Shown here one piece after another: positions 9,976-37,688 of a stretch of 64,000 bases of DNA (within the stretch, counting starts at the first letter, position 1; each line of letters begins with the position of its first letter). A model generated the notes under the pieces. It searched no databases. It was not told the DNA's origin and was given only the letters and a program-made list of their open reading frames with translations. Source of the stretch: Macrostomum lignano. Its lineage: Eukaryota. The DNA lies in contig NIVC01001995.1 in NCBI GenBank assembly GCA_002269645.1, positions 124,001-188,000 of the forward strand. The letters run 5' to 3'. The position numbers and the translations under genes were made by a program.

Positions 9976-10050
9976 ATTGCGCTTTTTTTATGTTTAGCAG
10001 TTTTTTAGTTTTTAAGGTGTTTTAATAAAAAAATTATTTTGCGCTTCTAA

Positions 10051-12532: not shown

Positions 12533-12677
12533 CTAGCAATCTTCGCCCCCCGATGGGGGACATCTGGATAGAATCTCTGTTCTCTACAAGTAACAAAAAA
12601 ACAGCCAAAAATCCTTCAAAAAGACAACAGACAAACTGCTCAAATGAAGTGCATTGCAAAAAGAAATCATCCCAAGA

Positions 12678-13342
12678 CCGCAAGCATCCCCCAGATAGCA
12701 AGCATCCCCCAGATAGCAAGCATCCCCAAGATAGCAAGCATCCCCAGATAGCAAGCATCCCCAAGATAGCAAGCATCCCCCAGATAGCAAGCGTCCCCCA
12801 GATAGCAAGCATCCCCCAGATAGCAAGCATCCCTCAGATAGCAAGCATCCCCCAGATTTCAAGCATCCCCCAGATAGCAAGCATCCCCCGGATAGCAAGC
12901 ATTCCCCAGAGAGCAAGCATTCCCCAGATAGCAAGCATCCCTCAGATAGCAAGCATACCCCAAATAGCAAGCATCCCTCAGATAGCAAGCATCCCTCAGA
13001 TAGCAAGCATCCCCCAGATAGCAAGCATCACTCAGATAGCAAGCATCCCTCAGATAGCAAGCATCCACCAGATAGCAAGCATCCCTCAGATAGCAAGCAT
13101 CCCCCAAATTGCAAGCATCGCCCAGATAGCAAGCATCCCCCAGAAAGCAAGCATCCTCCAAATAGCAAGCATCCCCCAGATAGCAAGCATCTCTCAGATA
13201 GCAAGCATCCCTCAGATAGCAAGCATCCACCAGATAGCAAGCATCCCTCAGATAGCAAGCATCCCCCAAATTGCAAGCATCGCCCAGATAGCAAGCATCC
13301 CCCAGAAGGCAAGCATCCCCCAAATAGCAACCATCCACCAGA
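12678..13342. repeat. 18-bp minisatellite in Helitron unit 3
   Basis: Tandem CAGATAGCAAGCATCCCC copies. Confidence 0.97.
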
Positions 13343-13437
13343 CAAAAAGTAGCTAGAGCGACAATTTCCTTAGCTTTATAGTGGCTCCTTTAAATTGGCA
13401 TGGCGCTTTATACCTTTACATTTGAAATTGTATATCT

Positions 13438-15135: not shown

Positions 15136-15205
15136 TTCTTTGATGTTTAGCAGTTTTGTTGTGTTTTTAAGGTGTTTTAATAAAAAAATCTTTTTGCACT
15201 ACTAT

Positions 15206-15262
15206 GATTCGAACCCAGGTCGCTACATTAGCATTCCAGTCTGTTCGCATCAGGGCTATCTC
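15206..15262 (-). other. tRNA-derived Pol III cassette inside Helitron unit 3
   Basis: Plus strand gattcgaacccaggtc...cagggctatctc, homologous to 10051 and 12004. Confidence 0.6.
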
Positions 15263-16935
15263 TTTTCAATTGGAGAACATGAATTGTGGCCCTTATAATT
15301 CAATTCTTACAGCAAGTCAATTGGAGTAAAAAGTTATGACATAATCAATTTCTCAGTCAGCCAGTATCAGTCTCAATTTAAGTTAGCAATATGGTTACGC
15401 AATTTAAATCAAGTCGTGTGTGCATTTCTTCGGTACTGTTTTCAACTTGTTGTGATGCAATCTTTATCACAATCGGAATTCAGTCAGTCAGTTTTTTCTC
15501 TAGCATTCTTACAATGCATTTCAGGTCGAAAGAGCTGCTTGACCTTTGCAAAAAAGCATGTTTTTCGAATATTTAATCCCTTTAAAATTGAGCAATTTCT
15601 TAGCCAAGATGCATGTACCGTCCCAGGAAAATTTCTGATCGAATAATGCAAGTTTGAAGAAAATCGGTTGAGCCATTTTTTCTGAAATCTATCGCATACC
15701 TACCTACCTACCTACCCACAGACAACTCATTTTTAGTATATAGGATATAGGAAGCTTGTCAAGGTGCCTTAAAGGGTCTACAGACTGAACAAAAAGATAT
15801 TTAATGCGAATTCAAATAAACTGGAAAATCAGCAAGCTTACAAGTATTATTAAGTTACCGGCAGTGATGCTACATGCCAAAATAAAAAAGAACAAACACA
15901 GGGCCAGAAAAAAAACACAGCAAGCTAAGTCTCTAAAATCATTAAAAAATCTACAATAAACTCGAGCTGAATGTGGATTCTTAACCTGGAACTACAGTCA
16001 CACCTCCAACCTTAGCAGATATGACCAGAGAAGCTTCATTGGATTGTGTTGCATAATTCAGCCATCTTAATCAATGGCAGAAAGGTTATTCCTGCTTTCA
16101 ACTATGTGCACATTTTTACAAATCAAGTAAGAAGTTGCTGAAAAACATTCCTGATATCCTGGTACATTCGATGAATGAGAACAGTGCTCGATTGATAAAA
16201 CTTTTTCAAACTCTTCTAGAAGAGGCAGCACTGCTACCAGAAAGTATAAATCAAATATAACTTTCTTGTCCCTTAAATTATCTCAAATAGCAGTTGCTCG
16301 GTCGTTATCAACTGCCCTGGGACCTTATTTTGGAAGTTTTTTCAGAGAGTTGACAGACAACTGGTAGCAGCTGCAGCCACCTAGTTTCAATTTGGCACAT
16401 AAAACGGTGCTCTGCCAGATCTAAAATTTCTTGGACTTTCTCATATCAAGTCCAACTTGAGTTGTACAGGAAGTACACATGGATGTCAATAGCCAGAGAC
16501 TCGGCTTGTTTGTCAAGAGCATCACATGCAGCTCGAGAAGCATTTGAAACGTGATGCAAGCAGCAGGATGACACCTGCAGCAGATTAGGTATGTTTCTGC
16601 ATAAGAGCGATCAGGCCTGAATGGCGTCCCACCATAATGTGTGGTCCGTCCGTCATCAGGATCTGAGACGAAGGACCACTATAAATAAAGTTATGCCTTC
16701 ATGTGCACTCTATTTGCTTACAACTGTTGTGTGCATAAAATACATAAAATACGCTAGATAAAAAACACAGAAAAAATTAACACAGATAAAACACAATAAC
16801 ACAGCAAACCACAAAAAACACAGCATGTAGTAACACTGGTTACCGGAAAAAACGACATGTAATACAATTTAGAAAAGTAAAGTAAACAAAACTATGTCAG
16901 CAATTAAAGACAACTACAAGCTGAAAACAATTTTG

Positions 16936-18378
16936 TCAGATGGAACGGCAGATTCTGAAAATTGATCCATCTTTGTCGCACACGATAATCTCGCCAAGGT
17001 CGCGCATTTCTGGATCAACGAACATGTCTGTTGGATTGGTAGTCCTGGTGGTAATCCTATACACTTCGTCCGACATACCCGTCGCGGAGATAGGTAACCA
17101 ACTGATAACTGCATTAGAACTGGGAGCCCAGGCAACAACAACGACCCGATTATTGGCAATTACAACTGGTATAACAAAAGATGTAATTTCGATATTAGGA
17201 GAAGACATCGCAGTCAGTCTATTGGAAGTGTTACGATAACCCTGAATGCGGTATCCATTGCTTGCCACTCGGTCGACAATCAAGAGGATATTTGATTTAC
17301 AGCACCATGCAAGCCGAATTGGAAAGGTTAGTTTTACATCGGTAGTGCACTCGCTGACGTTTGTGGGATTTTTAAGACGCGCAGAATAAATACCAGCTGT
17401 AGGACAGCACATAAAAAGCTGTTGCCCAGTACTAATGGCGTCATGCAGTTGGCCCTTACGAACACGGACAAAACCCACAAGATAGCATGAATCAGATGCG
17501 CACAACAATACGCGCTTATTAAATTGATCAGCTATAATTACATACTTGCTAATTGGACAATAGCGAACACGATACGGGTTAAATTTCACCGGCGTTGCGT
17601 CTCTATTCATCAATTTTAGAGTGCCGTTTCTGGTACCGTTAGGGCTAAAAAAGCTGATTTGCTTTGTACACTGTGCGAACTCGAGAACAATTATAGAATT
17701 TGGAATGAAGGCTCCAGAAAAAATATTCAAGCTCGATTTAAATATGAGCCTAAAAGCATCGTAAACTGGCGCACTACACTCCGGCAATTTGGAGGTGTCG
17801 ATAAGTGAAACTTCTTGCAACTCTGACTCTTTTTGTGATGATGAATCAATACAATCTCTGAAACTAGAGCAAGCTTCCTCCGAGAGGGCATTTTTGGTAA
17901 ACAGTTCTGTTTGAGAAACGACTGGTGAATAAGTTGATTCACTTTCGCTAATTTTCGAATCCGGATTTTTCCTTGGCTCCCAACGAATTCTTAGAGCTTC
18001 GATCAATTTGGTCGTTTTAACTTGAACGTCAGCTGTGTTCCAGACCCCTCTTCGAGCTAACTTTCTGTCGCTGTTGATAGCATAAACCAACTCAGCTTCG
18101 ATATCGCACAGCTCATCGACAGGCAAAGTGCACTGCGGCAATTCAGAAGCCTTTTGCAGAGCGTCACGCAACTGGACCCACTTTTGTTTCCATTCCGCTT
18201 GCTCTTGAGTCACAGCAGCGCGTCTCCGCTCTAGCGCTACTGAGAGTCGTTCAAAATAATCGTCTGGAGGACCGGGTTCGTGTCCCATAGATTCCAGCAG
18301 CTGGGAGGCTATTAATGCTTTGGCGCGAACTGACTCTTCCAGTTCGCTATAGGAGCAGCCGGACAGATTCGATGCCAT
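16936..18378 (-). CDS. Gene A: single-exon 480-aa protein with an N-terminal helical/coiled domain, an S/E-rich linker and a divergent NHL-like beta-propeller
   Basis: Long ATG-initiated ORF. Motifs LLESMG, DAISTGQQL, PIRLAWC, SWLP and CDKDGS are shared with the paralogs at 19811-23101 and 24337-37688. The fold call is pattern-based inference. Confidence 0.85.
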   Translation of the reverse strand: MASNLSGCSYSELEESVRAKALIASQLLESMGHEPGPPDDYFERLSVALERRRAAVTQEQAEWKQKWVQLRDALQKASELPQCTLPVDELCDIEAELVYAINSDRKLARRGVWNTADVQVKTTKLIEALRIRWEPRKNPDSKISESESTYSPVVSQTELFTKNALSEEACSSFRDCIDSSSQKESELQEVSLIDTSKLPECSAPVYDAFRLIFKSSLNIFSGAFIPNSIIVLEFAQCTKQISFFSPNGTRNGTLKLMNRDATPVKFNPYRVRYCPISKYVIIADQFNKRVLLCASDSCYLVGFVRVRKGQLHDAISTGQQLFMCCPTAGIYSARLKNPTNVSECTTDVKLTFPIRLAWCCKSNILLIVDRVASNGYRIQGYRNTSNRLTAMSSPNIEITSFVIPVVIANNRVVVVAWAPSSNAVISWLPISATGMSDEVYRITTRTTNPTDMFVDPEMRDLGEIIVCDKDGSIFRICRSI

Positions 18379-19810
18379 TTGGAGCTAAATCATTTTTGGT
18401 GCTTTTAACCGCGCTTCTTCATGCATTGTATGAAAATTAACAGACAAGTTGTTGCTTCAATCGGTCATGTATAGTTGGTCAAGAGGGTGATGACTGCAAT
18501 ATGGGTGGAACGCTTTCCTATTCCAAGGAACTAAAAAAGTTCAGTTTCCTAAACTTCTGAAGCCGGAGTCTGTTTGAAAAGAAGATAAACTGGTCCCCAA
18601 GCCAAATACAAGTTAAAATCAAGAAATGATGAGGAAAACACAGCTTCTCGAAGAAAAAGCGAACAATTTATTGATGTTGTTGTCTTAGAGATGATATTAT
18701 ATACAATATTTAGGGCTGCTTCAGACAGAGAATATCAAGACTTGAAAAGTATACTCAGCCAAATGCTAGTCCAATACGTTTCGATAGTTCGCCTACAGCT
18801 GCTAAAGTAAAACCTTTTCAAGGAACTCTTTTCAGGGAGAACGAAAATCTTCGAAACAACTAGCTGTACTACTAACAATAATATTTTATTTACAATTCAT
18901 ATTGTACGAGCTCATTAACATACGACTTAGGATAGTGTTTGGTAAAATAAATAGAAATTATCAGACAATAGACATAAGGCTATAAAAAAATAATATCTAA
19001 TGTGTAATGTGATCTAATATCTAATATGTACATGTGCACAGTGGCTGGAAAAATGATTGGCAACAAAAAATTTTTCCTCAAAGATAAAAAGACAGCATAT
19101 ATAAGAAACCTGATTTGAGCTGGCGAAAAGTTTAAATAACTCGTTACTCCAGAAAAAAGCAAGTGTATTATCCAAATTGCAAATGGAGGAATTGTGCGAA
19201 TTACTAATTTAGGCACCAGATTATTAAGAAAATGAAATTTAATTGAAATTTAAAGCTAATATGTTGACAAATTTAATTCGCGTAAAAGGGAAAAAATCAA
19301 TGGCATAACGATAAGTCAGAAAAATCTCTTATTGAAGCTCAAAACACATAAGTTCATAAAATTTTCACCAGTGAAATATTAACAAAACAAACATTAACAT
19401 AGCATTCCTGCATACCAAAGTACAATAAATAGAATTTCAGAGGGTATCTGCAGATTCAACAATAACAAATACATATTAATGAATTAGGTTACGTATTGTA
19501 ACTCCACTTTGCTTTCGATCAACCAGCTTCACAGCAAGTAGGCCATCTTTTCGAGCAATTGCACATGAGTTTAAAGGAAGAGCCAGCTATCGTAGAAAGT
19601 TGAATTTAGATAGCAGGAACTGGGCCTGTCAAAACAAAAGAAAACCAACTGGACGTGCGTTAGCCAAAAATTAAGATCCAGCTGCTCAGCTTAACCACAA
19701 TGCGCTTGCTGATATAAAGGTGGTCGTGCTCTAATCTTGTTTTCTGCATCCGCACTGGGGATTCAAAAGTTCCCCATAAGCCATGTACCCTTATGTTAAA
19801 GAAAGCAGAT

Positions 19811-22800
19811 TCATCCATAAAGTGGACGCCGAAAGGCTAAAACGGAGCCTTTCGCATCGCAAATAATAGCTTCACCAAAGCTGCTCGTCTCCGGTGGAAG
19901 CCAGCAAATATCTCTTGGGCTAATGTCTTCAATAGTAGCGCTGCAGTGCTCAGCAGCTAGATGCATGGCATTAGTGGGAAGCCAACTAATAGTACATGTT
20001 GAATCTGAAACCCAAACAAGTACCATTTCGTCAGCTTTAAGCAGGACATTCGGCGCCACCGATGACTGAATCGTCAATCTGGGAGCCGGGAGTGCCGTCA
20101 ATTGACAGCTGTCAATCTTAAAGGCTAAAATTCTATACTCCTCAGTCTTTATAGAGGTTCGATCAACTACGAGCAGCGTTTCTGACTTGTTACACCAGGC
20201 CATTCGCACAGGACAGGAGATCTTTAAATCGGTGGAGCATAGCTTAATTTCGGTAAGGTTATCAAAAATAGCCGTGTAAATGCGACCACCAGGACAGGCA
20301 ATAATCAGCTGACGGCTTGTACAAATTGCGTCTTCAAAGCCTCCTTTAGGAACTTTAAGAGAGTGCAAGAGACGACCCGCAGGATTAACACAAGCAATTT
20401 GCTTGTTGGTGGGATGAGAAACTATAATCCACTGTCCAGTGCAGCTAAGTCTAATGCGGTAAGCAGTGATATCAACGGCTTCACCACCAAGCGTGCACAG
20501 ACGAATACTTTCTAACTTTTTACCTGTCAAGTTATAAACACTGAAGCAACCCCGGCCAGATCCTTCTGAAACGTAAATTCGATCGGAAAGAACAGCTGCA
20601 GACTTCGGCTTCGAAACTTTAAATAGTTGTAAAACATTCTGCGCGTGTGAAGCAACCTGTTCAGTTGGACCTTTTCCAGCAAATCTTTCGCTATTTATGC
20701 GAGAATTGCTGTGTAAAGTTGAGTCGCTGTGATTTTTACAGGCGGTTAGAGCTTTCACAGTGTGAGATGCGTTGTCAGTCTTCGGCATGGGACATCCTTT
20801 GATCAGCGTTTCCGAAACAACTTCTGTAAAAAAATCATTGGCAAGGCGAACTACGTCGACTGAAACATCTAAGGTGTGCAGTTCTGCATCACCTGTAAGT
20901 AGCGAAGACGCACCCATGCCAACAGCATGTTCATCCTCTCTGCTCATTACTCCTTCTGCTTCCGTCCTATCAGTTGGAGCTCTATCCGCAGCGATGCCCT
21001 CGGTTGGCTCACATTCATCTTGAGTAAGATTCGCTGCAGAATCAGATTTCGCAGATTGATGCTGCAGGCTGCTGCAAAAAATCAGGGTTTGAAGAAAGAA
21101 TTGCATTTTAGTATACAACTTACGATCTTAACGATCTCGAACTTTAATTTTCACTTAAAAATGAAAGATATAAAAAGAAAAAAATAAGAGCTTACCTGTA
21201 AGAAATAACTATAACGTAGCCTGAGTTCTTACAAACAGCAAACGTGCCCTTTTCTGTAGGCACCCAATTCATGTCGATAGGAAACGACTCTATTCCAGTT
21301 TTACAGCTTTCCAGTTCGAGCAAATCGTATTGAGCGGACATCGAGTCTGAGTTAGATGCTAACCAACTAAAAACTGCCGTAGTACCATTAAGTCTTCCAA
21401 TTACAAGTTCACTGTCATTCATGATAGCGCTGGGAATCACCGATGAGTCAATAGCCAAACTTGGAAAATCCAATAATTTTAAACCCTGATCACATAGCTG
21501 AAATGCTCGAATTCGATAACTGTCAGAGTTAGTTTCGTTAACGTCGACAACAAGCAAGGTTACAGAATTGCTGCACCATGCTAATCTCATTGGAAGCAAT
21601 GGCTCTGGAACGCCAAGAATATCGAGCTGGGATAGTTGCTCAACATTATCTAAAGAGGAAATGAATATGCCACTTGATGGAAAGCATGCAATTATATGCT
21701 GGCCTGTGCTAATCGCATCTTGTAAGCCAGAATGCGTATTTACAATAGCATCGACTATTCCATTAGGTCTGGCGCACACAATTCTATCATTGCTCTGGTC
21801 GATAAGGATAATCCATTGCTTAGTTTGACATGAGCGAAGGATACTTGGAACGCAGGCTACTTGGCGGTCATCGTGTCTTTTAAGGACAAATGCCCCGCGT
21901 GCGAAACCAGAACTCGTATACACATTAATTGGACGAGACGATGTCGATCCCAAAACATAAAACTGCTTCTTCAAGTACGTCACGGAGATGGGATTCATAA
22001 AAGTACGAAACTTCCGCACAGATATAGATCGAGAGTTAGTAAAGTCCGAATGGTTGGAAGAGAATCCATCATCGTGAGTATCAAACAGTTTAGAAGATTT
22101 AACAATGTTTCGATCTTCATAACTGCTTTGTTGGTTATAGAAAAATTGCGACGCTCCAGCTTCAGTGTCAGTGAACAAGCTTCCAGAAATCTCCGAGCAA
22201 GTAATGGCGGAGAAAGGTTCTGACCATTCAAGCCCCTGATCCCTGGAACATACAGACGCGGATTGCTCACAAGTAATGGATACATCTGTGTCTGATTTCA
22301 CAGAAGCTTGATATTCCAAAGATTCTGCATCAACCAGCTCAGTTTCTTTCTCTGTGCTGCTGTCAGCCATCCTGCTACTGATTGTCGGCTTCTCATCGAC
22401 ACTTTTGAGAGCAGATTCGTCACGTGGAGCTTCCATGCAAGCGATTTCTATGGTAGCAGCTAAAGTAGGCTGGTCGATTCTTTTCGACAAAGTATAGTCG
22501 CTTTGGTCCGATGACGCAGCGGCGAGACGGTCACCTATTTCGCTATTCTCGTCACGGTTTACAGAAGAATTCGAGTCTTTTTGGTTGTCTCTGGCACGAC
22601 CCTGAATAGAAGCTGCACATTCAGGGCCTTCTGAGTTTTGACGGGAGGCCGACTCTTTGTCAATAATCTCACTAACTTTACTTCTTCCCAATGAACTGCC
22701 AGGGCTAGCAAAAGCTTTTCAATTTTTTCTTCAATATCGATGGTGTTCCAGAATCCGCGCATGACACTGCCAGACTCTGTGACAACTTTATTGATAGCGG

Positions 22801-23101
22801 AAGTTAAATTTGCCTCAGCATGGCACAGCTGGCTGACAGTGGTGCAGGTGGACTGCTTAGCCTCGGAGGCTTCGGAAACTGCTCTTTGTAATCGCTGACG
22901 TCTCTGCGCCCAGTCCGCCAGCTCTCGGTGGATAAGCGCACGTCTACGCGCAAGGGCAAGCGACAGCTGGTCAAAAAGTTCGCTAGGCGACGCGAGCTCT
23001 GGCCCCATCGATTCCAGCAGTAACTTCCCCATGTCCAACTTGCGTTGAACGTCCAGCTGTAGCGCTTGGAGCGCGTCGCTGTTTGGATTGTTAGAGTCGA
23101 A
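19811..23101 (-). CDS. Gene B: helical domain plus two tandem propellers (~1055 aa if the 1-nt frameshift near 22690 is repaired); start exon uncertain
   Basis: Exons 23101-21196 and 21071-19811. The 124-bp intron has TACAG|GTAAGC and TTTTTGCAG|C, both phase 2, and joins in frame. Acceptor TTCTTGCAG at 23102. Exon 1 is 1906 nt, 1 nt short of the required phase. Confidence 0.75.
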
Positions 23102-23850
23102 CTGCAAGAATATCAACAAGCTACTCGTTTTATTGAATAGTGAGAATAAATCACGCATCATATCAATATCATAGAGCTCTTACACCATTTGGCAAAATAG
23201 TCTTTATGACAGTGGCTACCAAACTCGAACCTAGCTGAATGCTAAGGTCCTGCCCTTAGATATTGGTGGCGTCAAATACGATAATCTGGGGCTTAAAAAT
23301 CAACTATAAAGCTGTAGTAGCGTAAGTCCGATCGTACGTCGGAACTTTTACACTGCGGAGATAGAAGCTAAGAACGATTTTATCTTACGATGGCTTTATA
23401 GAACTTGCCCAAGTCTTTTTCTATACAATGAACCCAATTTCTAACCAGTTTTCAATGCAATCTTAGGAATACGTTTTCTAATATGATAACTACGCCCGTA
23501 CCGACTTACTTTGGTCTCTTCGAAAAAACTAAAGCTCTAGATAATGCTTTAAATGCTTTTAATAAATTAAAAAGCTGAAAGACAGGCTTAGAATTACCAA
23601 AAAGCGCAAGGCAAGCACAACGGAAACAACACAGTTGAAAACACTGGCAGTGTTTCATTTTACTTTTGCTATTTAATAGGCAGCTAATCAACACGGAGAG
23701 CGAAGCTTAGAGAATGCAACTTTAATCACCAACTGAGAAAAGCATTGTTAAATAAAGATAAAAAATAATTAAACAGTGATTTAAAAATACGATGCACATC
23801 TACGAAAACAAATAGGTTTGAAAGGAACGGGTGTCTTTATTTAAATATAT

Positions 23851-23930
23851 AGAAATAGTATGTATATATACATATATATGTATATACGTACGTATATATA
23901 TCATACGTATACGTATATATATATATATGT
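23851..23930. repeat. (TA)n/(TATG)n microsatellite
   Basis: Read directly. Confidence 0.9.
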
Positions 23931-24336
23931 GCTTTGATTGTTTGTTCGTTTTGTGCGGCCGTCTGCCTAAATATATATTATTTAGCCCATACATTTGAAA
24001 CGCAAACTTTTTGATTAAATATTTCTATCAATTTATTAGACTGAAGTTACGAGCCAGCCAATATAAATTAAGTTAATGGAAATGTGAAATAAACAATTAA
24101 CAAACATTGAACGAAAACGGTCGAGACTTTTAGCCGATGATTTCGCTGATCGCTACCAAAAATGGAAGACAGAATACTTAAAGTAATTATTATACGGCTT
24201 TAAAGCGATAGATAGATAAATGCTAATCGAAGCACTCGTGACCGACAGCTCAAGGGAAAACCTCAGAATCTGATCTGGAGCAGTCAGCAAAGTCATTCAA
24301 CGGGCACACATAACCATATGGTAAATCCTCGTGTAC

Positions 24337-27300
24337 TCAACTTAGCTCAGCAATTTGCTCAACCACAACCACACTACCATTTACAGCGTCGCCAAATACA
24401 GCACCTTGACCGTTGCGAAAAGTACACAGAGCAGTTGGACGAGTCACCGAACCAATGGCAGAGTCGACGTCCTTAGCAACGGTAACAACGCCCAACCCGG
24501 AGTTGGCGAGATTAATTAGCAACAATCTGCAGACTTCTCTTATTCCATTGTCACCAAGGCAGACAGCGGCCGGCAGGATTAGTCGATCCCGGCTGTACAC
24601 CATCAGCCCAGTCAGCACCAAAGCCGACGACGTAGCAAATGGAAGCGAATTGAAGTTCAGGCGTCGGATAGGCGAAAAGGACAGCGGCGCCAGCGGAGTC
24701 CGCGCCAGGCCGCAAAGCACTACCGCCGACGGTTGCGATCCGGCCAAGGCCGCTGACGCAACAGCCAGGAGACTGTGGCTTTGGCACCAAGCCAAGCTGG
24801 CAGGCCGGCTGACGCTCAGAGATTCGCCGGACTGACGTTGCCACACGGCCGGGACGAGGCCGGGCTGGCTGGCGGCCAGCAGCAGGCAGTCGGTGTCCGG
24901 ACAGGCCACGCAGACAAGTCCGGCGTCGGATGCGGCAACATCCGTAGCACCGGTGGCAACTTCGGAGCCTTAAACAGTTATTGAAGCGTCGAAGGAGTCA
25001 TTGAAAAGTCATCGGCACTTGGCAAACCAGGGCTATAGTGGTGCATTGGCTAAGACAGGGTTTTTACACTAAGCAGATGTACAGTGGTGCAAATTGTTGT
25101 AAATTACCTTCAAGCGTCCACAGAAGACAACCCGACGGCAACTGGAAGGCGCGCACAGAGGTACTGGATTCGCCAGTTCGCGCCAAAACGAACAGCGCGC
25201 CGCGTCCACCGATGACAGCCGATCGAACCGCGCCGATTCCAGTCAGCGCAGTTAAGCTTGGCGGCAGGGGCTGCTGCTGGCCGCGAATGTCGTAGCAGCC
25301 AAGTCGACCGATTTTTTTAAAATCAGAGTCTTCCTGTTCAACCACGTACAGCCGGTCATTGTGGCAGGCAATAGAGAGCGGCGTGCCGGCGTTGGCGGTG
25401 CGAAAACGCCAGGAGTTTGCGCTACTGGAGGCGGAGGTCGAGGCTGAGACGGCGGAATTGTCGGCGCTTGAGGCAAGCGAATTGGAGCGCTGGGAATTCG
25501 CGAAAATACGAAGACTTAGTCATTGCGCCAACAAACAGATATAGAAATTTGGCACGATTCAACGAGTTTTAAAATAGGATTTTTCGTTTGATTTCATAAA
25601 ATTGTCATTTGATTTCGTCCATAGAAGTTGGCAGCGCGGCCATAGAGTCCACGGCAATAAAGTGCGCTGTTTTCCGATTGAATTCATAACTTTGCCACTT
25701 CATTTCGACTTGACGCGCGGAGTGACTCAAACACTGCCAGAGGGGGCTGGGATATCAGTGGGTGAATATCTATGGCCAAACCTCTCATAGAAATGAAAAG
25801 CCTATATGAACGTGTCCTCTTCTTGGGCAACAGTCACCTTCCTTGTGTGCCTAAAAATGTCTGCATACGCGTCCATTGGAAACGTATAAACGCGGCCAAT
25901 CGTATTCAACTGCGAACTCTGCCACCGTACTCTCCATTTCTTAACGCCGCGGAGCAGGCACACAGTTGTCTCAAGGCTTCGCTTAAACGCCAGCTAGCAA
26001 CACCTGAGCTTCAACAGGAACTTAGCAATCCGCCTGATGGCATCAACCTAACGCAGTGGAGACTCATGGTGCTTTTCCGCTGCGGCTACGTTGCAATAGA
26101 GGAAATTTCCGCCGCGAAGTGCCTTGCCTGCATGGGAACGACATGTGATGCGGTTTTTGCCCCTGTGCATCAATGAGCAGCAGATAATGTGAAATTTGTA
26201 GCGTGTTGCAGCGAACGAGCATTAACTTTGGCGGACATAACTGATTTCACTGTTGCAACTGCCTACTTCCTCGTGTGACTTAAATACACAGCTTTCTGTT
26301 TTTAACAGTTCTTTCTGTACTGGACAAGCGCATCGACTATTCTGTTGCCTTTCTACTGGGTATGTCGAAATGAAGTGGCAAAGCCATGAACTCAATCGGA
26401 AAACAGCGCACTTTATTGCCATAGACTCTATGGCCGCGCTGCCAACTTCTATGGACGAAATCAAATGACAATTCCATGAAATCAAACGAAAAATCCTAAA
26501 TTAATTATAGAGTAATACATCTCCTTTTGAAATCCGTTTGATTTTTACTTGATTAAAATCCCAGACACTAAACTGGTTCATAGACGGCAGCAGTCTGACG
26601 TAGCAGCGTGGGAGATGTTACACAGACAAACCATAGACAACAGAAATCAATTTGGGCATCAATAACTGAGCCACAGGTGGAATGCATGACTAAAGTAAAG
26701 AATGTCACAGAGAGGACCAAAAACGCCGAAATCAGTCTGGTGGAAAGAAAGAGAATCGTGAATGCATGCGTGACTGGTGGTTTGGAGTTTGGTGTTCGTG
26801 AAAGAAAGCAAATCGATGGAGACGACGAATAGAATAAAAACGACAAGATTTCACACTAAAAGGCGCCAAAAGTAGTATTAAAAATCGCCTAGGAGTCTCT
26901 TTTGTAGCGTCTTATTGTCTGCGACTTTGAAACGACTCTGATGCGACGCAAGTGACCCTGCCGCGACGGTATAACGACTCTGGGGCCGTAGACTCGTATT
27001 CGAAGCGTGCTATAGTCGTGTTTGAAGCGCATTTGCGTCGCATGATGAATTAGAGTGACATTTGTTTTTTTTATTAGAGGCAGGGGGGTTGTGTGCACCC
27101 TGGCGCACTTTAAGCGACATAGGCACACAACCGGCGAGAGGCATTGCTGCCCATTCCGCCGACTCCCCTGAGCAGGCATACAAGCGCGCGGATACGTACG
27201 CAGGCACACACTCACACAGGAGTGTACAGCGGCCCTAACTTTATATTATCGTTAGGCATGTACACTTCACTGCGCCTTGGGGGGTTGGTTGGCTCTCAAG

Positions 27301-30300
27301 GCCGTTAATTGCACGAGCAGAGCCAAGCCGAAATTCCAATTCAGCCCCAAATTAATGTGACTGCACTTGGAATCGAGCCTGGGTCGCTGGCACACCAGAG
27401 CAGCTGCGCTACCGCTGGGCTACGGCCCCCCTAGAAAAATGTATGCGGCCAACACACACGATTCTTGGATTCTATCAAGACTTACGCGTTTGAGTCGTTA
27501 AAGTAAGTCACAAAAGTGACTCCAGAGTCGTTTTCTAAAACCTAGTCTAATCAATTTTTCCAAAAAACGAATAAAGTTTCGGACTGAGACTCGACCTTGG
27601 ATAGTTGTGATGCAGAAAATTTTAGAGCTTCTCAATCAATTTTCATCGGGAATGGTCTTGTTTAAGATAAAACGAGCAGCTTGTTTTTGAAGTTTCTTTA
27701 GGGAGTAACCCGTCGAACTTTTCACCCAGAATTTTTTCCGGAATTTCGTGACCCGGGCCCGATTTTTAATTGATTTCCAGGTGAACGCCCGGATCAGCTT
27801 TTTTGGCCCGGAACAGCCCCTTTTCCCGGAAAAAGATCCGGAAATATGTTCCGGTAAAATTACGGGAAAAGGAAAGCTGTTCCGGTTGGATTTTCCGGAA
27901 TTTTTCACTCGGAACACTATGGAATTCTGGGTGTACACCCGAATTTCAGTAGTGTTCCGGGTGAAAATGTTCCGGGTGAGATTTCGGGACTTCAGTCGGA
28001 ATTCTCCAGTGATCCGGACCAAATGATCCGGAAAATTCACCCGGATCAGCTCCCTTGACCCGAATTTCAGCCAAATTCCGGGCGAAGCTGATCCGGGAAA
28101 ATTTCGGGACTTGAGTCGGAATCAATCCGGCATCCATTATACAAGTACCGTGGGGATTTTGAGAGGAAGCCTCCGATGGAAAACCGCTGAATACAGACCC
28201 CAGCAAATGGGTATCCCATCAGGCAATCCCTGGCATCCATTTGGTCAACGGCGCTAATTCCTCTTGGAAAGCGAGGGGTAATAAAGCCTCGAAATTGCAA
28301 TATGAATTGATCTGCTTTTCGGCGGCTCTGTAGTGTCCGTAATGTGAGGCTGAGCCCATCCTCCGTACAGGTGACAATTGAAAAATTGTTGCGCCCTGTT
28401 TGTGTGCGAGAGGTTTGACTTCCACTGGCATGTAGTCTATCACAGCTGCTTAGTGTGTCAACGGTCTGAATGATTCTATCGTCATATTTGACGCTTAGAA
28501 GCATAAAATCAGCCAACCATATTGTTTGGCACAGCTGGGTGTCTAGACGGAGACTGTGGCATGGTTCCAAATAGCTCTAACTGGCCCAGTATGCAAAGCA
28601 GCTTTCCTATTAAGATAGACGCTAATCCGATTTTTGTCGGTACATGCTTCCAGTGGTTTGTCTAAGGCGTTTGCAGTTGCACCAGCCGTGAGCAGATCCC
28701 GTCTAGAGTAGTCTATACGGACTACTATGGTCGGTAACCATATCGTGTGGCTCAAGGCAGCTGATAAGCTGACCCGCGATGGATAATCAATCCTCGCTTC
28801 TGTTGTGGCTCAAGGCAGCTGATAAGCTGACCTGCGATGGATAATCAATCCTCGCTTCTGTTGTGGCTCAAGGCAGCTGATAAGCTGACCTGCGATGGAT
28901 AATCAATCCTCGCTTCTGTTGTGGCTCAAGGCAGCTGCTAAGCTGACCTGCGATGGATAATCAATCCTCGCTTCTGTTGTGGCTCAAGGCAGCTGATAAG
29001 CTGACCTGCGATGGATAATCAATTCTCGCTTCTGTTGTGGCTCAAGGCAGCTGCTAAGCTGACCTGCGATGGATAATCATTAATCAATCCTCGCTTCTGT
29101 TGTGGCTCAAGGCAGCTGCTAAGCTGACCTGCGATGGATAATCAATCCTCGCTTCTGTTGTGGCTCAAGGCAGCTGCTAAGCTGACCTGCGATGGATAAT
29201 CAATCCTCGCTTCTGTTGTGGCTCAAGGCAGCTGATAAGCTGACCTGCGAGGGGTAATAAAGCCTCGCTTTGATGAGACAACTTATCTGCTTTACGGCGG
29301 CACTGTAGCGTCCGTAATGTGAGGCTGAGCCCATCCTCCGTACAGGTGACAATTGAAAAATTGTTGCGCCCTGTTTGTGTGCGAGAGGTTTGACTTCCAC
29401 TGGCATGTAGTCTATCACAGCTGCTTAGTGTGTCAACGGTCTGAATGATTCTATCGTCATATTTGACGCTTAGAAGCATAAAATCAGCCAACCATATTGT
29501 TTGGCACAGCTGGGTGTCTAGACGGAGACTGTGGCATGGTTCCAAATAGCTCTAACTGGCCCAGTATGCAAAGCAGCTTTCCTATTAAGATAGACGCTAA
29601 TCCGATTTTTGTCGGTACATGCTTCCAGTGGTTTGTCTAAGGCGTTTGCAGTTGCACCAGCCGTGAGCAGATCCCGTCTAGAGTAGTCTATACGGACTAC
29701 TATGGTCGGTAACCATATCGTGTGGCTCAAGGCAGCTGATAAGCTGACCCGCGATGGATAATCAATCCTCGCTTCTGTTGTGGCTCAAGGCAGCTGATAA
29801 GCTGACCTGCGATGGATAATCAATCCTCGCTTCTGTTGTGGCTCAAGGCAGCTGATAAGCTGACCTGCGATGGATAATCAATCCTCGCTTCTGTTGTGGC
29901 TCAAGGCAGCTGCTAAGCTGACCTGCGATGGATAATCAATCCTCGCTTCTGTTGTGGCTCAAGGCAGCTTATAAGCTGACCTGCGATGGATAATCCTCGC
30001 TTCTGTTGTGGCTCAAGGCAGCTGATAAGCTGACCTGCGATGGATAATCAATTCTCGCTTCTGTTGTGGCTCAAGGCAGCTGCTAAGCTGACCTGCGATG
30101 GATAATCAATCCTCGCTTCTGTTGTGGCTCAAGGCAGCTGCTAAGCTGACCTGCGATGGATAATCAATCCTCGCTTCTGTTGTGGCTCAAGGCAGCTGAT
30201 AAGCTGACCTGCGAGGGGTAATAAAGCCTCGCTTTGATGAGACAACTTATCTGCTTTACGGCGGCACTGTAGCGTCCGTAATGTGAGGCTGAGCCCATCC

Positions 30301-33300
30301 TCCGTACAGGTGACAATTGAAAAATTGTTGCGCCCTGTTTGTGTGCGAGAGGTTTGACTTCCACTGGCATGTAGTCTATCACAGCTGCTTAGTGTGTCAA
30401 CGGTCTGAATGATTCTATCGTCATATTTGACGCTTAGAAGCATAAAATCAGCCAACCATATTGTTTGGCACAGCTGGGTGTCTAGACGGAGACTGTGGCA
30501 TGGTTCCAAATAGCTCTAACTGGCCCAGTATGCAAAGCAGCTTTCCTATTAAGATAGACGCTAATCCGATTTTTGTCGGTACATGCTTCCAGTGGTTTGT
30601 CTAAGGCGTTTGCAGTTGCACCAGCCGTGAGCAGATCACGTTGTCACGGCTGCTAACAAGAGTACCGGATCCCGGTATTCCGCCACTCTCTGGAAGGGGC
30701 CTTTGGATAGAAAGGCCCAAGCGATTGAAGCGACTGCTTTGGCGCGTGTGCCGTCGCAGCAACCGCAGCCGTCACGAAGCCCGTCATGCACTACAATGAT
30801 GGATCAGATTCGGGCCCAAGGCGAAGCCGAGGACGAACTGTGTACGTTTTTTATGCATATACTAGAAGACGTTAGCAGCCTCGTATATATATAAGTGTTG
30901 TCGATTCTTAAGTTTGAATCTGCTTCGCCACTCTCCTCATTTTTATGTACTTAATAGGCCATCAATTGAGCGGAGTTCGTGAAAAGCTGTCGGAGGCTCA
31001 AGCCGAAAATCGTCAGATGAATGAAAGCTGAAGTTCTTCGATTGGAAGCTATCTCCGCTACGAGCTCGTCGGAATCCGACACGACCGTGGCGAGAAGCCA
31101 GGCAGTGCTCTTTCAATCTCGGCCAGCCGCAGAGCGGCAAAAGAAGGCGGACCAGGTGAAGGCGCGACGAATCGCCAGTGCTGCCGAAAATGAGGGGCCG
31201 ACTTCTGGAAACATATATTTCCAGACGGCGAGCTACTCGAGGAGTGAAATGCGGGCGATGTCCAAGATCGAGTGCATAACACCACCACCGCATTTATTTG
31301 CAATTAATTTCTAGGTTTTTGTTAAGGCCAAATTTGCTGGGTTCGATTTCATTAGAAACGCTCTTCGAGACATTGGCTGTCTACATTTATGAGCCCTGAT
31401 AGGTCCTGGAAAATGAGACAAAAGTCGTTCCTTAATTTTTGCGGAGATCTTTACAATTCTTAAGCAAGTGAATAGACAAGTCAGCTGACTTGAGTTAACT
31501 AGCTAATTAGCTGTATAGCGAGTGACCCACCTGACAGATGCAATCAGAGGTAGGCGATGGGGATCCCTGAAGAGTAGCCAATGTCGCGATAAGGTATATA
31601 AAACCGCATACGGCTTCAAAAAAAGTTAATGGTAGCATCGAAGTCCAGCTGCCCATCCGAGTGACATTCAGAAGGTCAGCATTTTTTGTTTCTGAAAGTA
31701 CGTAGAAGTGCATAGAAATATACGATTTGCAGTTGTGCACAACTGAATTCAGTATTTCTGTTCGTGGACGGCTAAATCGAATTCGATTCAATTCGTAGTC
31801 GTGGAAAATGTATGGAACAATGACCCGTTCTTTATTTAATTTTCTGCTACTGTGATAAGCCCAAGATTTGGCTGCAAATCCGGTTCAATCATCCAGAATT
31901 CACCTGGATTCGTGTGCTAATCCGGTTCACTCTCCCGGAATTCGCCCGGATTTGTGTGCTGATCCGGTTCACTCGAACGGAATTAGCCCGGATTTGTGTG
32001 CTGATCCGGTTCACTCGCCCGGAATTGTGTGCTGATCCGGTTCACTCGCCCGGAATTAGCCCGGATTTGTGTGCTGATCCGGTTCACTCGCCCGGAATAT
32101 TCGATTCAATTCGTAGTCGTGGAAAATGTATGGAACAATGACCCGTTCTTTATTTAATTTTCTGCTACTGTGATAAGCCCAAGATTTGGCTGCAAATCCG
32201 GTTCAATCATCCAGAATTCACCTGGATTCGTGTGCTAATCCGGTTCACTCTCCCGGAATTCGCCCGGATTTGTGTGCTGATCCGGTTCACTCGAACGGAA
32301 TTAGCCCGGATTTGTGTGCTGATCCGGTTCACTCGCCCGGAATTGTGTGCTGATCCGGTTCACTCGCCCGGAATTAGCCCGGATTTGTGTGCTGATCCGG
32401 TTCACTCGCCCGGAATTAGCCCGGATTTGTGTGCTGATCCGGTTCACTCGCCCGAAATTAGCCCGGATTTGTGTGCTGATCCGGTTCACTTGCCCGGAAT
32501 TGTGTGCTGATCCGGTTCACTCGCCCGGAATTGTGTGCTGATCCGGTTCACTCGCCCGGAATTCGCCCGGATTTGTGTGCTGATCCGGTTCACTCGCCCG
32601 GAATTAGCCCGGATTTGTGTGCTGATCCGGTTCACTCGCCCGAAATTAGCCCGGATTTGTGTGCTGATCCGGTTCACTCGCCCGGAATTGTGTGCTGATC
32701 CGGTTCACTCGCCCGGATTCGGCTGCAGATCCGGTTCACTCGCCCGGATTCGGCTGCAGATCCGGTTCACTCGCCCGGAATTCGCCCGGAACTGTCACCG
32801 AAATTTTTTTATTGATCCGGGTCAATTTTCCGGAATTTTTCTTTTTGATCCGGAAAATTCGCCCGGATTCTGTAAACTTTCGTTACAGATCCGGAATTTC
32901 CACCCGGATCGGATTGCATTACTGGAATATGAAAAAATTCCGGGTGAACGCAAAAAATTCCGGGCGAAATTCCGGGTGAAAAGTTCGACGGGAAATATTC
33001 AGAGCACCGGCCCATATAATTCGTACAGAAGTAAATCCCAGGAAGGAGCCGACACCCATGGACAAAATTAACACTAGAATACTCATTAAGTTACCCATAT
33101 TGCATTTTAGGCTGGCATGATTTTGCTTATAGTTCAGTGACCTCTCTGGGGAATATACGCGTATAACATCTATGGCGACGCATTCACTTACGTTAGCTAA
33201 AACAGCACGGTAAGGAGGTTCACTGGCAACCAGTTGCTTTGCCTCATCATTGGCCGTCTTTGCCTCTATTCTGGCGCTGATATTGGCTTTAACTGTGTCG

Positions 33301-36300
33301 CCAGTGCCGCCAGCAGCTGAGAAGGACTCAGTCAACGGTATGAACAGGCTGGAAAGGCGAAGTGCAGCACCTGAGATAACAGTGCTGACTGACCTGATTG
33401 AACTTGCAGCTGGCAAGAGAAGCGGTTCAATGCCGTCAGCGGAACGGAAGCCGCAATTTGGGCAGGCAAGGTCGCGAGTTCGAGAATCCTGTAGCGCGAC
33501 GAGACAAGGTGCGCAGAACACGTGGCCGCAAGGCATCCGTCTCGGATCAATAAACGACGCGTTGCAGACGTTGCAGGTTTGAGTGATGTCCCTCTTCTGC
33601 TGCGCCTTGTCTGGGAGAGCATTTTCTTGACTGGACAGGCTGCAGTTTTTTAGATTGGCTGTGTAACCAGTGTTATTTGTCTCTTCATTAACATTGGATT
33701 GAGCACTAGCCATTTCTGAAGCTTTCACCGACAAAGAAGATACTTTGGGAGCAGCAGCCATCGACGCAGTGATACTAGAGGCACTAAACGTCTCAATGCT
33801 TGGCCCAGCAGAAGATTTTTGCTTACGCGCAGTGGACACAGCAACTGTTGCCACGTCAGCTGTAGCCGACTGATTCGCTAAGTTGGCCGGTTCTCTAAAG
33901 GAAAATGAAAAGAAAGGAAGTTGAAATCTAGTCGCGGAACAAGTCTATAGAATTAATTTAAGAATAAATAACCGAAATTATACTTTTAGCCGAGTCAGAC
34001 ATTCGATTTATCCATCTGATTCTAGATATGCTTACGAAGGTACCTAAAAAGTTTTTGGACTTGACCCTTTTTGAGCAAAGTCAGTGCACCAAACTTTCAC
34101 ACCTTTTCAGAGTACCCCCCACTCTGAATGCAGCGCTCCATACAAAGAAACCAGGCTTGAAAGCACTGGGACCACTTTTTAGGCATAGGCACCTCTTCTA
34201 GAGCCTGTAGGGAGGCTCTGTAGGCTTCCTCTTCGTCATGGAATTAAAGTTTTTCTGTTTTTCCTTGGCTAGTGCAAACAACAAGTAGTCCCACGGTGCC
34301 AAGTCAGGAGAATAAGGCGGATGGGGAAGCAGCTGAATGGATTTCTGAGCCATGAAATCCACATTGCGAGCTGCTGTGTGTGCACAATGGCATTTTCGTG
34401 GTGCCACAACAGACCGCACGTTCCGCTGCGAGGTCTCTTCTCGCGCCACTTCTGCAGAACCTCTGGAACGCATACTGTTGTGTACCATTCTGCATTGACT
34501 GTTCTTTGCTTATTAAGTGGCACAATCGCCAAATCGCCTGTTATGGAGAAGAAAGTGGCGACCATCTTTGAGTTAAAAAGCTAAAAATTTAGGAAATGAC
34601 CGAGGAAAGGATGTTCGAGTCCAAAAAATGTTTAGGTACCCTCGTATAATAGCCAACGCTTCAAATTAGGTTGCCTATTTGCTATAGGAAAGGCACAACA
34701 TATCGAAAGGTGAACATTGGGTCTGCCTCCTATCAGAAGCAATAACAATTTTAATATGAAAAAAGTGAAGTTTCTATCTCCGCAGTGTATTGTTCAGCGA
34801 AAACCAGCCTCTTTAACATTTTCTAAGAAACGTAGTTTACCGCCCTACTACTTTGAGTAGTCCTTGGCCGACACACAAAAGCACTACTCACGCTGGCCTA
34901 TCAATAAACAGTACGGAGCCGAGCTTGTCCCAGACTGCCACAGTCTGGCAGTTGTCATCGTCACTCGTGCTTGTCACATCGGCTGGCAGGCACTGCGCCA
35001 GCTGCACATGGCGCACCGAGTAATCATCTAGCGAGGTGGCGCCCGGCGGCAGCCAGCTGACAACTAACCGGCCGAGCCAGTAGCGCGCCACAACCAGCTC
35101 GCCATCTGCGCGCACCAGCAGCGCCGGCAGAGTGGCCGATTGAAGAGATACACAAGGCCGCTGGGCTGGCCGAAATTCCGCTGTTGAAGTGGCCGAGTTT
35201 GCATTGATTTTATAAGCGCGGATCGAATACTCGGAGCTGCTGTCGGCTAATTGGTCTATGACCAGCAGCAGCCTGTACTGCCGGCACCAGAACAGGCGCT
35301 TGGGCTGCACGGGTGCGTTGGACTTAAATGTGCACCTGTTGGTGATGTTAAATCAGCATTAGGAATGTAAATAGGGAATGTCAACCAAAGCACCGGGATG
35401 TAGCCAATCTATAACTTGTTCGACTAGCCGATTAGAGAGGCCGTGACATCTCACCCATACCCCTCCTTTGAAGAAGCTTTGGACTTTTATAGGATAGGAA
35501 ATTTATCGGAGTCTACAAATTGACTGCCTCAAATTCTAACCAATTTGAAAAAAAGAATATAAAAAAGAAATTAAAGTAACTCTTCATGCGATTTTTTACA
35601 CATCAATACAATGTCGTGTGCTGTCAAGAAAGCTTTCACCAACCCTGTTGTATACCTAAGGTCAACTTTGTTAGAAAGACTGAAACTTTCTAAGCTGTAT
35701 GCCAACATGTGTAAGCCAAGGACTGCTCAACTAGAAGGACGGGGAAACTAATTTTCTTAGAAAACGTTAAGGAGGCCTAAGGTTTTGCCGAAAAATACAC
35801 TACAGAGATAGGACCTTTTCCTTTTTTCATATTAAAATTGCTATTGCTTTCGATAGGAGGCAGAGCCAATGTTCAGCTTTTGATATGTTTTGCCCTTCTT
35901 ATAGCTCTATTGATATTTTTATTCTACGTACAATTGCATATGTCCTGTGCCTAAAAACCATTAAAATGGCACGGCTCGGCTCACTGGTTTTATGAATATA
36001 TTTTAATATCTCAGCTGACTGTGTAAGAATATGTGTGACAGAGATGATAAAATAGATTCATAAAACCAGAGTCGAGCAGTGCCATGCATTTTTATGACTT
36101 CTAGGTACAGGGAATGTACGTAGAATAAAAATCTAACATAGAATCCTAATTTTCTGAAGAAAAAAATCTTTATTAATATCAATAGAGCTATAGGAAAGGC
36201 AAAAAATATCAAACTGCCTCCTATCGAAAGCAATAACAATTTCAAAATGAAAAAGTGAAAAGCTCCTATCTCTGTAGTGCATGTTTTTCGAAAAAACATG

Positions 36301-37688
36301 CCTTTTCGGCCCTTGTAGCTGAGTAGTCCTTGGTGTAAGTTAGCATATTCATGATTGTTTATTCCTACGTACAACATCGTCCAAAAACCGCTAGTTTTAT
36401 AATCATGGTGGCTATGCCACCAAGAAGTGCATCTCGAATCCACCGATGGACTTATTTAGGTCTGGGATTAAGATATTGTTGTATTTTAATCGAAGTAAAA
36501 ATGATGACATGTATTCATTTTGCTAACACACCTGTTCAAACCGCTTCCTTTATCAACAGGGGCAGTGTAAAATTGGTTGCGCTCAGAGCAGACAATCAGG
36601 TGTTGCCCAGTGCTAACAACGTCCACCAAGTCAGCCAAAATGCCAGCCACAGCGGTAACTTGGCCGCTGGTCTTGGCCCAGGCCACCCGCTTGTGCCCGG
36701 CATCGAGCAGGATCAGGCGATTCGACACGCGGCAGGCGGCAACCCGAACCGGCCAGGTCACTTTTTTGTCGGAAAATTTCACTTTTCCAATGCTACGAAT
36801 CGCCGAACAATTTTCGTCGCTACTAAGCGAATAGGCCACAAGGCGAACTTGTTCGATACCGCGAGAACCGGACACTTCTAGGCAGTAGTAGGTGTCCCCG
36901 AGGCGGGTTGCAGAAATCAGAGGTGAAAGAAGACGGACTGACTTGGACTGAGTTATTGCTCCAAAAAGAGCTGCATTTGATCTGCCCGACTCAGCAATAG
37001 AACCTGCATTTGATCTGCCCGACTCAGCAACAGAACCTGCATTTGATCTGCCCGACTCAGCAACAGAACCTGCATTTGATCTGCCCGACTCAGCAACAGA
37101 ACCTGCATTTGATCTGCCCGACTCAGCAACAGAACCTGCAGTTGATCTGCCCGACTCAGCAACAGAACCTGCAGTTGATCTGCCAGACGCCGACTCACTT
37201 AAACACCCAGAATTCGCAACAGAAGAAGCTAAAGTCGAACTGTTTGAATTCGAGGCAGAATCAGAAGAGCTCAGTACAGCATCTGCTGCAGTTTTCGCCG
37301 ACTGTCTCGGTGACTGCACCGGATTTTGGTCAACTTTGCTACCAAAATGTACCAACGAATAGCCGCCCCCAGCAACCGGAACAAAGGCGGCGGTCCTGTA
37401 ACTGTCTGGCACAGGCGTCCATCGCAGTTCTAAACAGCGCATGAGCCTGGCAACTACGGACTTTAACTCGGCATCAGATTCTCTGCTTAATTTGTTCTCT
37501 ACCGAGCAGTTCCGAGTAAGCTGTGCGAGTTGCCCTGAGAGACGGGCGAAAAAAGCATCAATGTTTGTCTGGCAACAGCCGGCCGACTCTGTGGCGTCAA
37601 GGAGTCGACGAACAACGTCAGCCTTCTGACGGAGTCGCTGCCGGGCAAGCCGCACCGGGATCAGCTGACTATCAGCTGACTCTTGCAT
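24337..37688 (-). CDS. Gene D: 5-exon ~1105-aa protein with architecture helical domain - propeller - C3HC4 RING - propeller (probable E3 ubiquitin ligase)
   Basis: Exons 37688-36532, 35335-34892, 33894-33192, 25489-25108 and 24968-24337. All junctions are GT-AG with matching phases (2, 2, 0, 1). Total 3318 nt = 1106 codons. The exon 3-4 join across 7.7 kb is the least certain. Confidence 0.72.
25577..26496 (+). mobile_element. Internally deleted Tc1/IS630-type DNA transposon with ~135-bp TIRs
   Basis: Inverted arms at 25575-25709 and 26364-26498 have TA at both outer ends. The internal ORF 25772-26176 contains LPPYSPFLNAAE, the DDE_3-type LPPYSPxLNPIE motif. Confidence 0.85.
26870..27600. 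repeat. Interspersed element rich in GCGAC/GTCAC motifs, related to 44715-45330 and interrupted by a SINE
   Basis: Shared short motifs (gcgac...gtgac...gcgacggtat; gttttctaaa) with the 45000-45330 region. Ends not resolved. Confidence 0.35.
27200..27431 (-). mobile_element. tRNA-derived SINE
   Basis: Minus strand begins GGGGGCCGTAGCCCAGCGGTAG (A box) ... GGCTCGATTCC (B box). The 3' part resembles 37830-37930. Confidence 0.75.
28272..30640. repeat. Macro-repeat: three copies of a ~470-bp unit (28272, 29249, 30213; the last truncated) alternating with two arrays of a 58-bp repeat (28746-29248, 29721-30212)
   Basis: The 58-bp period was confirmed at 28746, 28804, 28862, 28920, 28978 and 29036. 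Unit copies 2 and 3 are near-identical, while copy 1 differs in its first ~60 bp. Confidence 0.95.
31782..32790. repeat. Subterminal 27/40-bp repeats (GTGCTGATCCGGTTCACTCGCCCGGAATT...) plus a ~318-bp tandem duplication (31782 and 32100)
   Basis: Read directly. Confidence 0.9.
33192..33894 (-). CDS. RING-finger exon (exon 3 of gene D)
   Basis: CNVC...CGHVFC..C...CPNC is a C3HC4 RING. Acceptor TTTTCCTTTAG|A at 33895 and donor AAC|GTAAGT at 33191. Confidence 0.85.
34035..34644 (-). mobile_element. Internally deleted mariner (DD34D-type) element, 610 bp
   Basis: Imperfect ~28-bp TIRs (CGAAGGTACCTAAAAAGTTTTTGGAC / GTCCAAAAAATGTTTAGGTACCCTCG) with TA on both sides. Fragments TVNAEWY, LLWHHENA and HPPYSPDLAP; frameshifted. 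Confidence 0.9.
34680..36345. repeat. Three copies of a ~200-bp intronic repeat: 34680-34875 (+), 35700-35915 (-), 36175-36345 (+)
   Basis: Shared core ctgcctcctatc(g)aaagcaataacaattt...aaaaagtgaa...ctatctc and flank gagtagtccttgg. The middle copy is inverted. Confidence 0.8.
36965..37190 (-). repeat. Coding 33-bp VNTR (AGSVAESGRSN, about 6.5 copies) in exon 1 of gene D
   Basis: In-frame 11-aa repeat in the linker between the helical domain and the propeller. Confidence 0.9.

Follow-up and report, generated by a model that had tools for sequence, protein, structure and literature searches.

Between positions 16936 and 37688 of a 64,000-nucleotide (nt) stretch of the Macrostomum lignano genome (assembly GCA_002269645.1, contig NIVC01001995.1, positions 124,001 to 188,000 of the forward strand; hereafter the window), we identified three genes, A, B and D, that combine a helical domain (H) with a propeller domain (P) of ~270 amino acids (aa) in three different ways. 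All three lie in the same orientation on the minus strand; A has the architecture H-P, B is H-P-P and D is H-P-RING-P, and individual propeller copies are referred to as P1, P2 and P5. Our favored reading, which we hold with moderate confidence, is that this region carries three functional, transcribed members of an M. lignano multigene family that would act as TRIM-NHL-like regulators. An earlier note on this DNA, made from the sequence alone, had proposed the three co-oriented genes with these architectures, and both are present in the sequence at these positions. The architectures are also supported by gene models, with two qualifications: the H exon of B is out of frame in the window, and the H of D is marginal. 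The window is eukaryotic DNA, carrying introns, satellites and transposon fragments.

The assembly, Mlig_3_7, has gene models that were built solely from RNA-seq assemblies, the transcripts being cut at trans-splice and poly(A) sites that had been mapped experimentally (PMC5730564). Since these models are derived from RNA-seq, the loci are transcribed and transcript data underlie the fused architectures; the possibility raised in the earlier note that the loci might be untranscribed is set aside by the RNA-seq-derived models that cover them. A homeologous locus on scaffold NIVC01000089.1 (L001) has the same gene order, D-B-A, with a DNA identity to the window of 87–97%.

As judged from sequence profiles and predicted structures, P is a very divergent six-bladed NHL propeller that is closest to the TRIM-NHL type. 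In the AlphaFold model of A, residues 209–480 form 24 strands arranged in six four-stranded blades (predicted local distance difference test, pLDDT, about 90), and a Foldseek search with this model returned beta-propellers of many kinds. Pairwise blastp comparison of the propellers of A and B_P2 gave 33% identity (E 5e-43), while B_P1 matched both A (E 3e-30) and B_P2 (E 3e-31). An intron divides the first propeller of D, D_P1, into two halves, each of which matches other copies (E 1e-11 to 1e-12 for the second half). The motifs DAISTGQ.L..C, P.RLAWC....LLVVD, Y.I.AF, SWLP and CD..GS occur in all four of these good copies. When a profile built from five family sequences was compared with the PDB, it matched the Drosophila protein Thin in its NHL domain (E 1e-4). 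A profile of 17 propellers matched Thin (E 2.7e-14), TRIM3 (E 3e-12), TRIM2 (E 4e-10), TRIM71 (E 1e-8), Brat (E 1e-8), NHLRC2 (E 7e-6) and Mei-P26 (E 0.012), and none of its PDB matches was a non-NHL protein. The family member P0011 reached 21.0 bits against the Pfam NHL cut-off of 20; the proteins of the window lie below this threshold, and a direct Pfam scan of the window's open reading frames (ORFs) returned the RING alone. Two proposals of the earlier note are thus borne out. The repeated ~270-aa domain is a beta-propeller by its AlphaFold fold, its Foldseek matches and its NHL profile matches, and its derivation from TRIM-NHL-like parts is supported by its sequence matches in the PDB, all of which are to TRIM-NHL proteins or NHLRC2. 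The propellers differ in isoelectric point (A_P, 9.4; D_P1, 9.1; B_P2, 8.5; D_P5, 6.2; B_P1, 5.2). Three of the five are thus basic and two acidic or neutral, so that RNA binding is plausible for a part of the propellers and unlikely for the rest.

The fifth copy, P5 (24337–25489), is only 13–19% identical to the others. We compared it with a profile of 20 family propellers from which P5 and its homeologs had been left out; it aligned collinearly at 22.4 bits, which corresponds to E 3e-9 for a single comparison and E 2e-4 for the six-frame window, and was the best six-frame segment of the window outside the four good copies. Its AlphaFold model has a predicted template modelling score (pTM) of 0.76, with blades at pLDDT 70–88, and matches the structures of the Brat NHL domain (root-mean-square deviation 3.4 Å over 218 alignment columns), PknD, Pizza6 and PAL. 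Searched alone against the PDB by sequence, P5 matched no solved NHL domain. The earlier note's count of five diverged copies therefore stands, with P5 recognized by profile and model; the recurring motifs that it described were shown in four of them.

H is a helical domain of ~130 aa, probably a coiled coil. The H domains of A and B share 42% identity (E 2e-24, blastp), and in the AlphaFold model of A the domain comprises helices at residues 9–30, 38–79, 87–107 and 115–132 (pLDDT 50–60). The N-terminus of D is a much weaker match, with E 0.17 against a narrow H profile and, in a single comparison, 2.4e-5 against a wide one; in the family alignment it is missing roughly the middle third of the domain.

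Gene A (16936–18378) is a single-exon ORF of 480 aa, and its product is identical to an NCBI protein annotated on NIVC01001995.1, a contig of 215,001 bp. Its H domain, with four predicted helices, occupies aa 1–140 (17959–18378), and its six-bladed NHL-type propeller, assigned from AlphaFold, Foldseek and the comparison of the family profile with TRIM-NHL proteins, occupies aa 209–480 (16939–17754); the linker at residues 96–207 is disordered in the AlphaFold model. The gene ends at a true stop codon, and no splice donor is found there, at the position equivalent to the ends of B_P1 and D_P1. The A gene of the homeolog is frameshifted near aa 244.

Gene B (19811–23161) was modeled with consensus GT-AG junctions, which give an in-frame ORF of 1065 aa. 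Its homeolog protein, P0047, is a contiguous H-P-P product of 1054 aa, while the annotation of B in the window itself, P0001, is an 833-aa P-P protein without H that starts at an internal Met. The H domain of B lies at 22682–23101, as located by blastp and the homeolog protein, and the annotated N-terminus of the homeolog begins at a 'cttgcag' acceptor near 23103. DNA alignment revealed that an AAA run at 22677–22679 is one base short of the AAAA found in the homeolog, and it is this 1-nt deletion that places the H exon out of frame with the body of the gene in the window. This deletion could reflect either a genuine frameshift or an error of the PacBio-based assembly in a homopolymer. A 29-nt micro-intron at 22653–22681 that would have joined the H exon to the body was ruled out, as the homeolog reads through this position with one extra A. 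The first propeller, P1 (21196–22007), ends at a TAA stop that lies inside the splice donor CAG|GTAAGC. It is followed by a 124-nt intron (21072–21195, GTAAGC...TTTTTTGCAG) that keeps the reading frame across the junction, and then by the second propeller, P2 (19814–20623), which is the copy nearest to the propeller of A. The P1-to-P2 junction of our model (…VIVISYSSLQHQ…) is exactly that of P0001, and the corresponding junction of P0047 reads …VIVISSSSLQHQ….

Gene D (24337–37688) has five exons, and consensus GT-AG sites give an in-frame ORF of 1105 aa. On this contig it is annotated as a 1083-aa RING product, 22 residues fewer than in our model, and all four junctions of the model are identical in the homeolog protein P0049 (1055 aa). 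The first exon begins with the shortened H-like domain (aa 1–95, 37404–37688), which has weak similarity to H, and ends with the first half of P1 (36532–36935), as delimited by motif and splice analysis. Between the two lies a linker with a 33-nt coding tandem repeat (36971–37188; 6.6 copies of SVAESGRSNAG); about two copies are present in the homeolog protein, so that copy number differs between the gene copies. Exon 2 (34892–35335) encodes the second half of P1 and ends at a TGA stop inside the donor GC|GTGAGT. Exon 3 (33192–33894) encodes the RING between two linkers, exon 4 (25108–25489) the first part of P5, and exon 5 (24337–24968) the rest of P5 and the stop codon. The C3HC4 RING finger (aa 641–681, 33453–33575; CNVC…CGH..C..C…C..C) has the spacing C-x2-C-x11-C-x-H-x2-C-x2-C-x11-C-x2-C, with all eight zinc ligands present. 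In the Pfam scan of the ORF at 32919–33854 it scored 34.1 bits as zf-RING_UBOX (E 2.7e-8) and 32 bits as zf-C3HC4, both above the cut-offs. The RING was also detected in the homeolog P0002, and its ligands are present in P0025 and P0049. No B-box was matched by Pfam in any ORF of the window or in any family member scanned, and no Cys/His cluster follows the RING. Intron 3 (25490–33191) is 7.7 kb long, whereas that of the homeolog measures ~2.8 kb, and the additional sequence contains 58-nt and 42-nt satellites and a fragment of a DDE_3 transposase (25772–26176). This intron also holds three repeat units of ~965 bp, each with the same ORF of 122–167 aa (28067–30509). In intron 2, a mariner-like transposase remnant (34198–34565, …PHPPYSPDLAP…) was recognized by eye; the fragment tested had no Pfam match.

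Selection on the modules was estimated by the Nei-Gojobori method as the ratio of non-synonymous to synonymous substitution rates (dN/dS, omega) between the window and the homeolog. Omega was 0.15 for B_H, 0.22 for B_P1, 0.30 for B_P2, 0.28 for A_P (41 synonymous and 44 non-synonymous differences; dS 0.26), 0.29 for D_P5 exon 4 and 0.50 for A_H. The two long linkers of B gave near-neutral values of 0.81–0.92, and the short linker of A 0.27. By these ratios the folded modules are under purifying selection, which argues that A, B and D are working genes, and a pseudogene or non-coding reading was ruled out on the same dN/dS values. The earlier note had described the family as rapidly diverging. 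We did not see this between the homeologs, given the omega of 0.15–0.30 in the folded domains and 0.50 in A_H; the paralogs are old, with identities of 25–33%. Synonymous divergence across the locus is a mosaic, as the dS of 0.26 in A_P (window 16939–17754 versus L001 10719–11462) compares with 0.02–0.05 in B and D overall. Gene conversion and a comparison of non-equivalent copies are both possible explanations.

To determine the range of the family we used an exhaustive profile search of 1.84 billion cluster representatives, since a word-indexed search with A had returned nothing, A itself included. The profile search recovered 24 proteins, 17 of which belong to the family, and all 17 are from M. 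lignano, in line with the lineage-specific family that the earlier note had proposed. The seven others include NHL-repeat proteins, and all four that were scanned (P0018–P0021) carry Pfam NHL. No relatives outside M. lignano, including in planarians and parasitic flatworms, were found among the representatives, within whose clusters sister-species orthologs of >50% identity could be hidden. The family proteins are named 'hypothetical' or bear spurious automatic names, and in the literature on NHL and TRIM-NHL proteins in Macrostomum or flatworms, and under the family gene IDs, we found no publication on the family. Besides H-P and H-P-P, its members have the architectures H, P-H-P, P-P-P(-P) and H-P-P-P-P.

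Family proteins occur in the accession runs PAA61801–61810 and PAA91365–91374, and in a shorter run, PAA93908–93913, on a third scaffold. These runs probably mark a tandem array of some ten family genes on three homeologous scaffolds, with the window holding one end of it. Thus, the three genes of the earlier note are real, and the cluster to which they belong is larger, probably ~10 genes with additional architectures. On L001, the region past A (12985–20730) contains an H-only gene (138 aa), then an H-P gene and an H-P-P gene. The annotation prefix Mlig024364 (g1–g4) is common to the L001 copies of B and A and the two genes that come next, and these four may form one transcriptional unit. 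In the window, homology to L001 stops just downstream of A, and positions 1–15148 hold ~11 kb of satellites in place of the further family genes of the homeolog. These satellites include 296 copies of a 23-nt unit (TCTTTAATGTTTGACATGGTGGC; 3161–9973) with strong GC and AT skew, as well as 18-nt arrays. The neighboring genes are a WD40-repeat gene (38784–40971, minus strand) and a protein-kinase-like gene (60629–63298, plus strand), which we take, by eye, to be PRPF4-like and SCYL-like, respectively. Both are broken up by tandem repeats that are open in several reading frames.

The stops after B_P1 (TAA, 21193–21198) and D_P1 (TGA, 34886–34893) are embedded in strong splice donors, and in a neighbor-joining tree of the propellers, which carries no support values, B_P2 pairs with A_P and B_P1 with D_P1. 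Together these observations fit a fusion of neighboring H-P units. We infer that the architectures would have arisen by tandem duplication, followed by fusion of neighboring units through splicing across the old stop. In B, an H-P unit would have been joined to a second propeller, and in D, an H-P unit to a RING and a degenerate propeller. As no H remnant is detectable in the linkers of B and D, the downstream unit would have lost its H upon fusion. By analogy with TRIM-NHL proteins, H may mediate oligomerization, each propeller may bind a target, either RNA or protein, and D alone would add RING-dependent ubiquitin ligase activity. The RING-less members could act alone in the manner of Brat, and not necessarily via D. 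On this analogy the family probably consists of oligomerizing NHL-based regulators with one E3 ligase member. An immune or RNA-regulatory role of the family is speculation. A more elaborate version, to which we give little credence, is a combinatorial, lineage-specific regulator set, possibly co-transcribed, with an isoform switch and H-mediated hetero-oligomers, and possibly engaged in post-transcriptional control in the germline or stem cells. If this were true, intron retention would yield an A-like H-P protein and splicing would yield H-P-P from B or the RING-bearing H-P-RING-P from D, and the worm could make either a RING-less binder or an E3 ligase from the same gene.

The domain content of the cluster could also be explained, as the earlier note proposed, if A, B and the other RING-less members were adaptors or decoys that hetero-oligomerize through H with the RING-bearing D, giving a ubiquitin ligase with interchangeable substrate receptors. 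In keeping with such an arrangement, only D and its homeologous copies have a RING among those family representatives that were put through a Pfam scan, H-type N-termini are common to all members, and the members are clustered, co-oriented and, as the shared prefix Mlig024364 in the homeolog suggests, may be co-transcribed. However, the H of D, which lacks its middle third and is barely recognizable, is the least likely partner for the H of A or B, and RING-less TRIM-NHL proteins such as Brat function without a ligase. We therefore consider this arrangement unlikely. A somewhat less probable explanation holds that the long architectures are minor products, and that H-P, X-P and RING-P are separate cistrons released by spliced-leader (SL) trans-splicing at the same acceptors. 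A stop is found within a few codons of the end of every propeller, many family proteins are annotated as 5'-partial, and M. lignano has many operons that are resolved by SL trans-splicing (PMC8629364). Yet the stops that follow B_P1 and D_P1 belong to strong GT donors, cis-splicing from these donors joins the next exon in frame, and a pipeline that cuts at trans-splice sites still yields fused proteins, in two homeologs as well as in D on this contig. There may be a mixture of fused and separate-cistron products.

The explanation that we consider least probable is that A, B and D are duplicates in decay within a neopolyploid genome, still transcribed yet no longer functional. It would account for the frameshifts of B in the window and of A in the homeolog, for introns swollen by repeats and for the degenerate P5. 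It is difficult to reconcile with the dN/dS of 0.15–0.30 in H and P (0.50 in A_H) as opposed to 0.8–0.9 in the two long B linkers, and with the intact long ORFs of A and D. In addition, each of the two frameshifts is a single event in an assembly based on PacBio data, and that of B falls in a homopolymer and may be a sequencing error.

Several observations weigh against our interpretation of A, B and D as functional TRIM-NHL-like regulators. The frameshift between H and P-P means that B is possibly disrupted in the window, and P5 has a 54-residue low-confidence stretch (residues 224–277), so that it may be a degenerate propeller. The model of H is of low confidence. Neither the PDB nor Pfam gave a significant relative for the H profile, the matches being at the level of coiled-coil noise, and a TRIM_CC match in one of ten H members (E 0.026) was likewise at noise level. 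Since the B-box is absent and the RING internal, membership in the TRIM family proper fails. The propeller tree, as noted, is without support values. Finally, functional or expression data for the gene IDs were not found in the main text of the literature searched or in supplementary tables of four M. lignano papers, the negative being a weak one for a single truncated table.

In the stem cells and germline of flies, worms and mammals, TRIM-NHL proteins have key roles in post-transcriptional and ubiquitin regulation, and M. lignano serves as a model of stem cells and regeneration in which transgenesis and RNA interference are available. If the proteins described here are active regulators, this expanded and private family would illustrate the freedom with which the NHL module recombines, with the B-box dropped, the RING moved or lost and up to four propellers in a chain, and fusion of genes by capture of a stop codon in a splice donor could be studied in it as a tractable example. 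Whatever their activity, about 20 'hypothetical proteins' of M. lignano can be relabeled as divergent NHL-propeller proteins. The family opens no long-standing question.

Among known systems, the family most resembles the TRIM-NHL proteins (TRIM2, TRIM3, TRIM32/Thin, TRIM71/LIN-41, Brat and Mei-P26), in which an N-terminal RING is followed by a B-box, a coiled coil and an NHL propeller. The two share a six-bladed C-terminal NHL propeller preceded by a helical region, and TRIM-NHL proteins take the first 12 places among the 18 PDB matches of the family profile. One member of the family has a C3HC4 RING, while the RING-less members are comparable to Brat, a RING-less TRIM-NHL protein that works without a ligase. 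The family differs from TRIM-NHL proteins in having no B-box, in a RING that is absent (A and B) or placed between two propellers (D), in up to four propellers per protein, and in an H domain that is not significantly similar to TRIM coiled coils. With respect to RING-type E3 ligases in general, D has the cross-brace C3HC4 motif, from which ligase activity is predicted. The C-terminal half of D, consisting of the RING, a linker of ~120 aa and P5, recalls NHLRC1 (malin), in which a RING is followed directly by an NHL propeller without a B-box or coiled coil. This likeness is one of domain order only; in D, the RING-P5 half is fused behind H-P, and P5 has no sequence match to solved NHL domains. 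NHLRC2 and generic multi-NHL proteins, whether bacterial or secreted, share NHL repeats with the family at the profile level and can likewise carry several propellers per chain. They have neither H nor RING, have other partner domains and are more distant than the TRIM-NHL proteins (E 7e-6 versus 3e-14). Where the earlier note saw a candidate for an undescribed system, the NHL-propeller homology instead points to an unusual variant of the known TRIM-NHL protein type.

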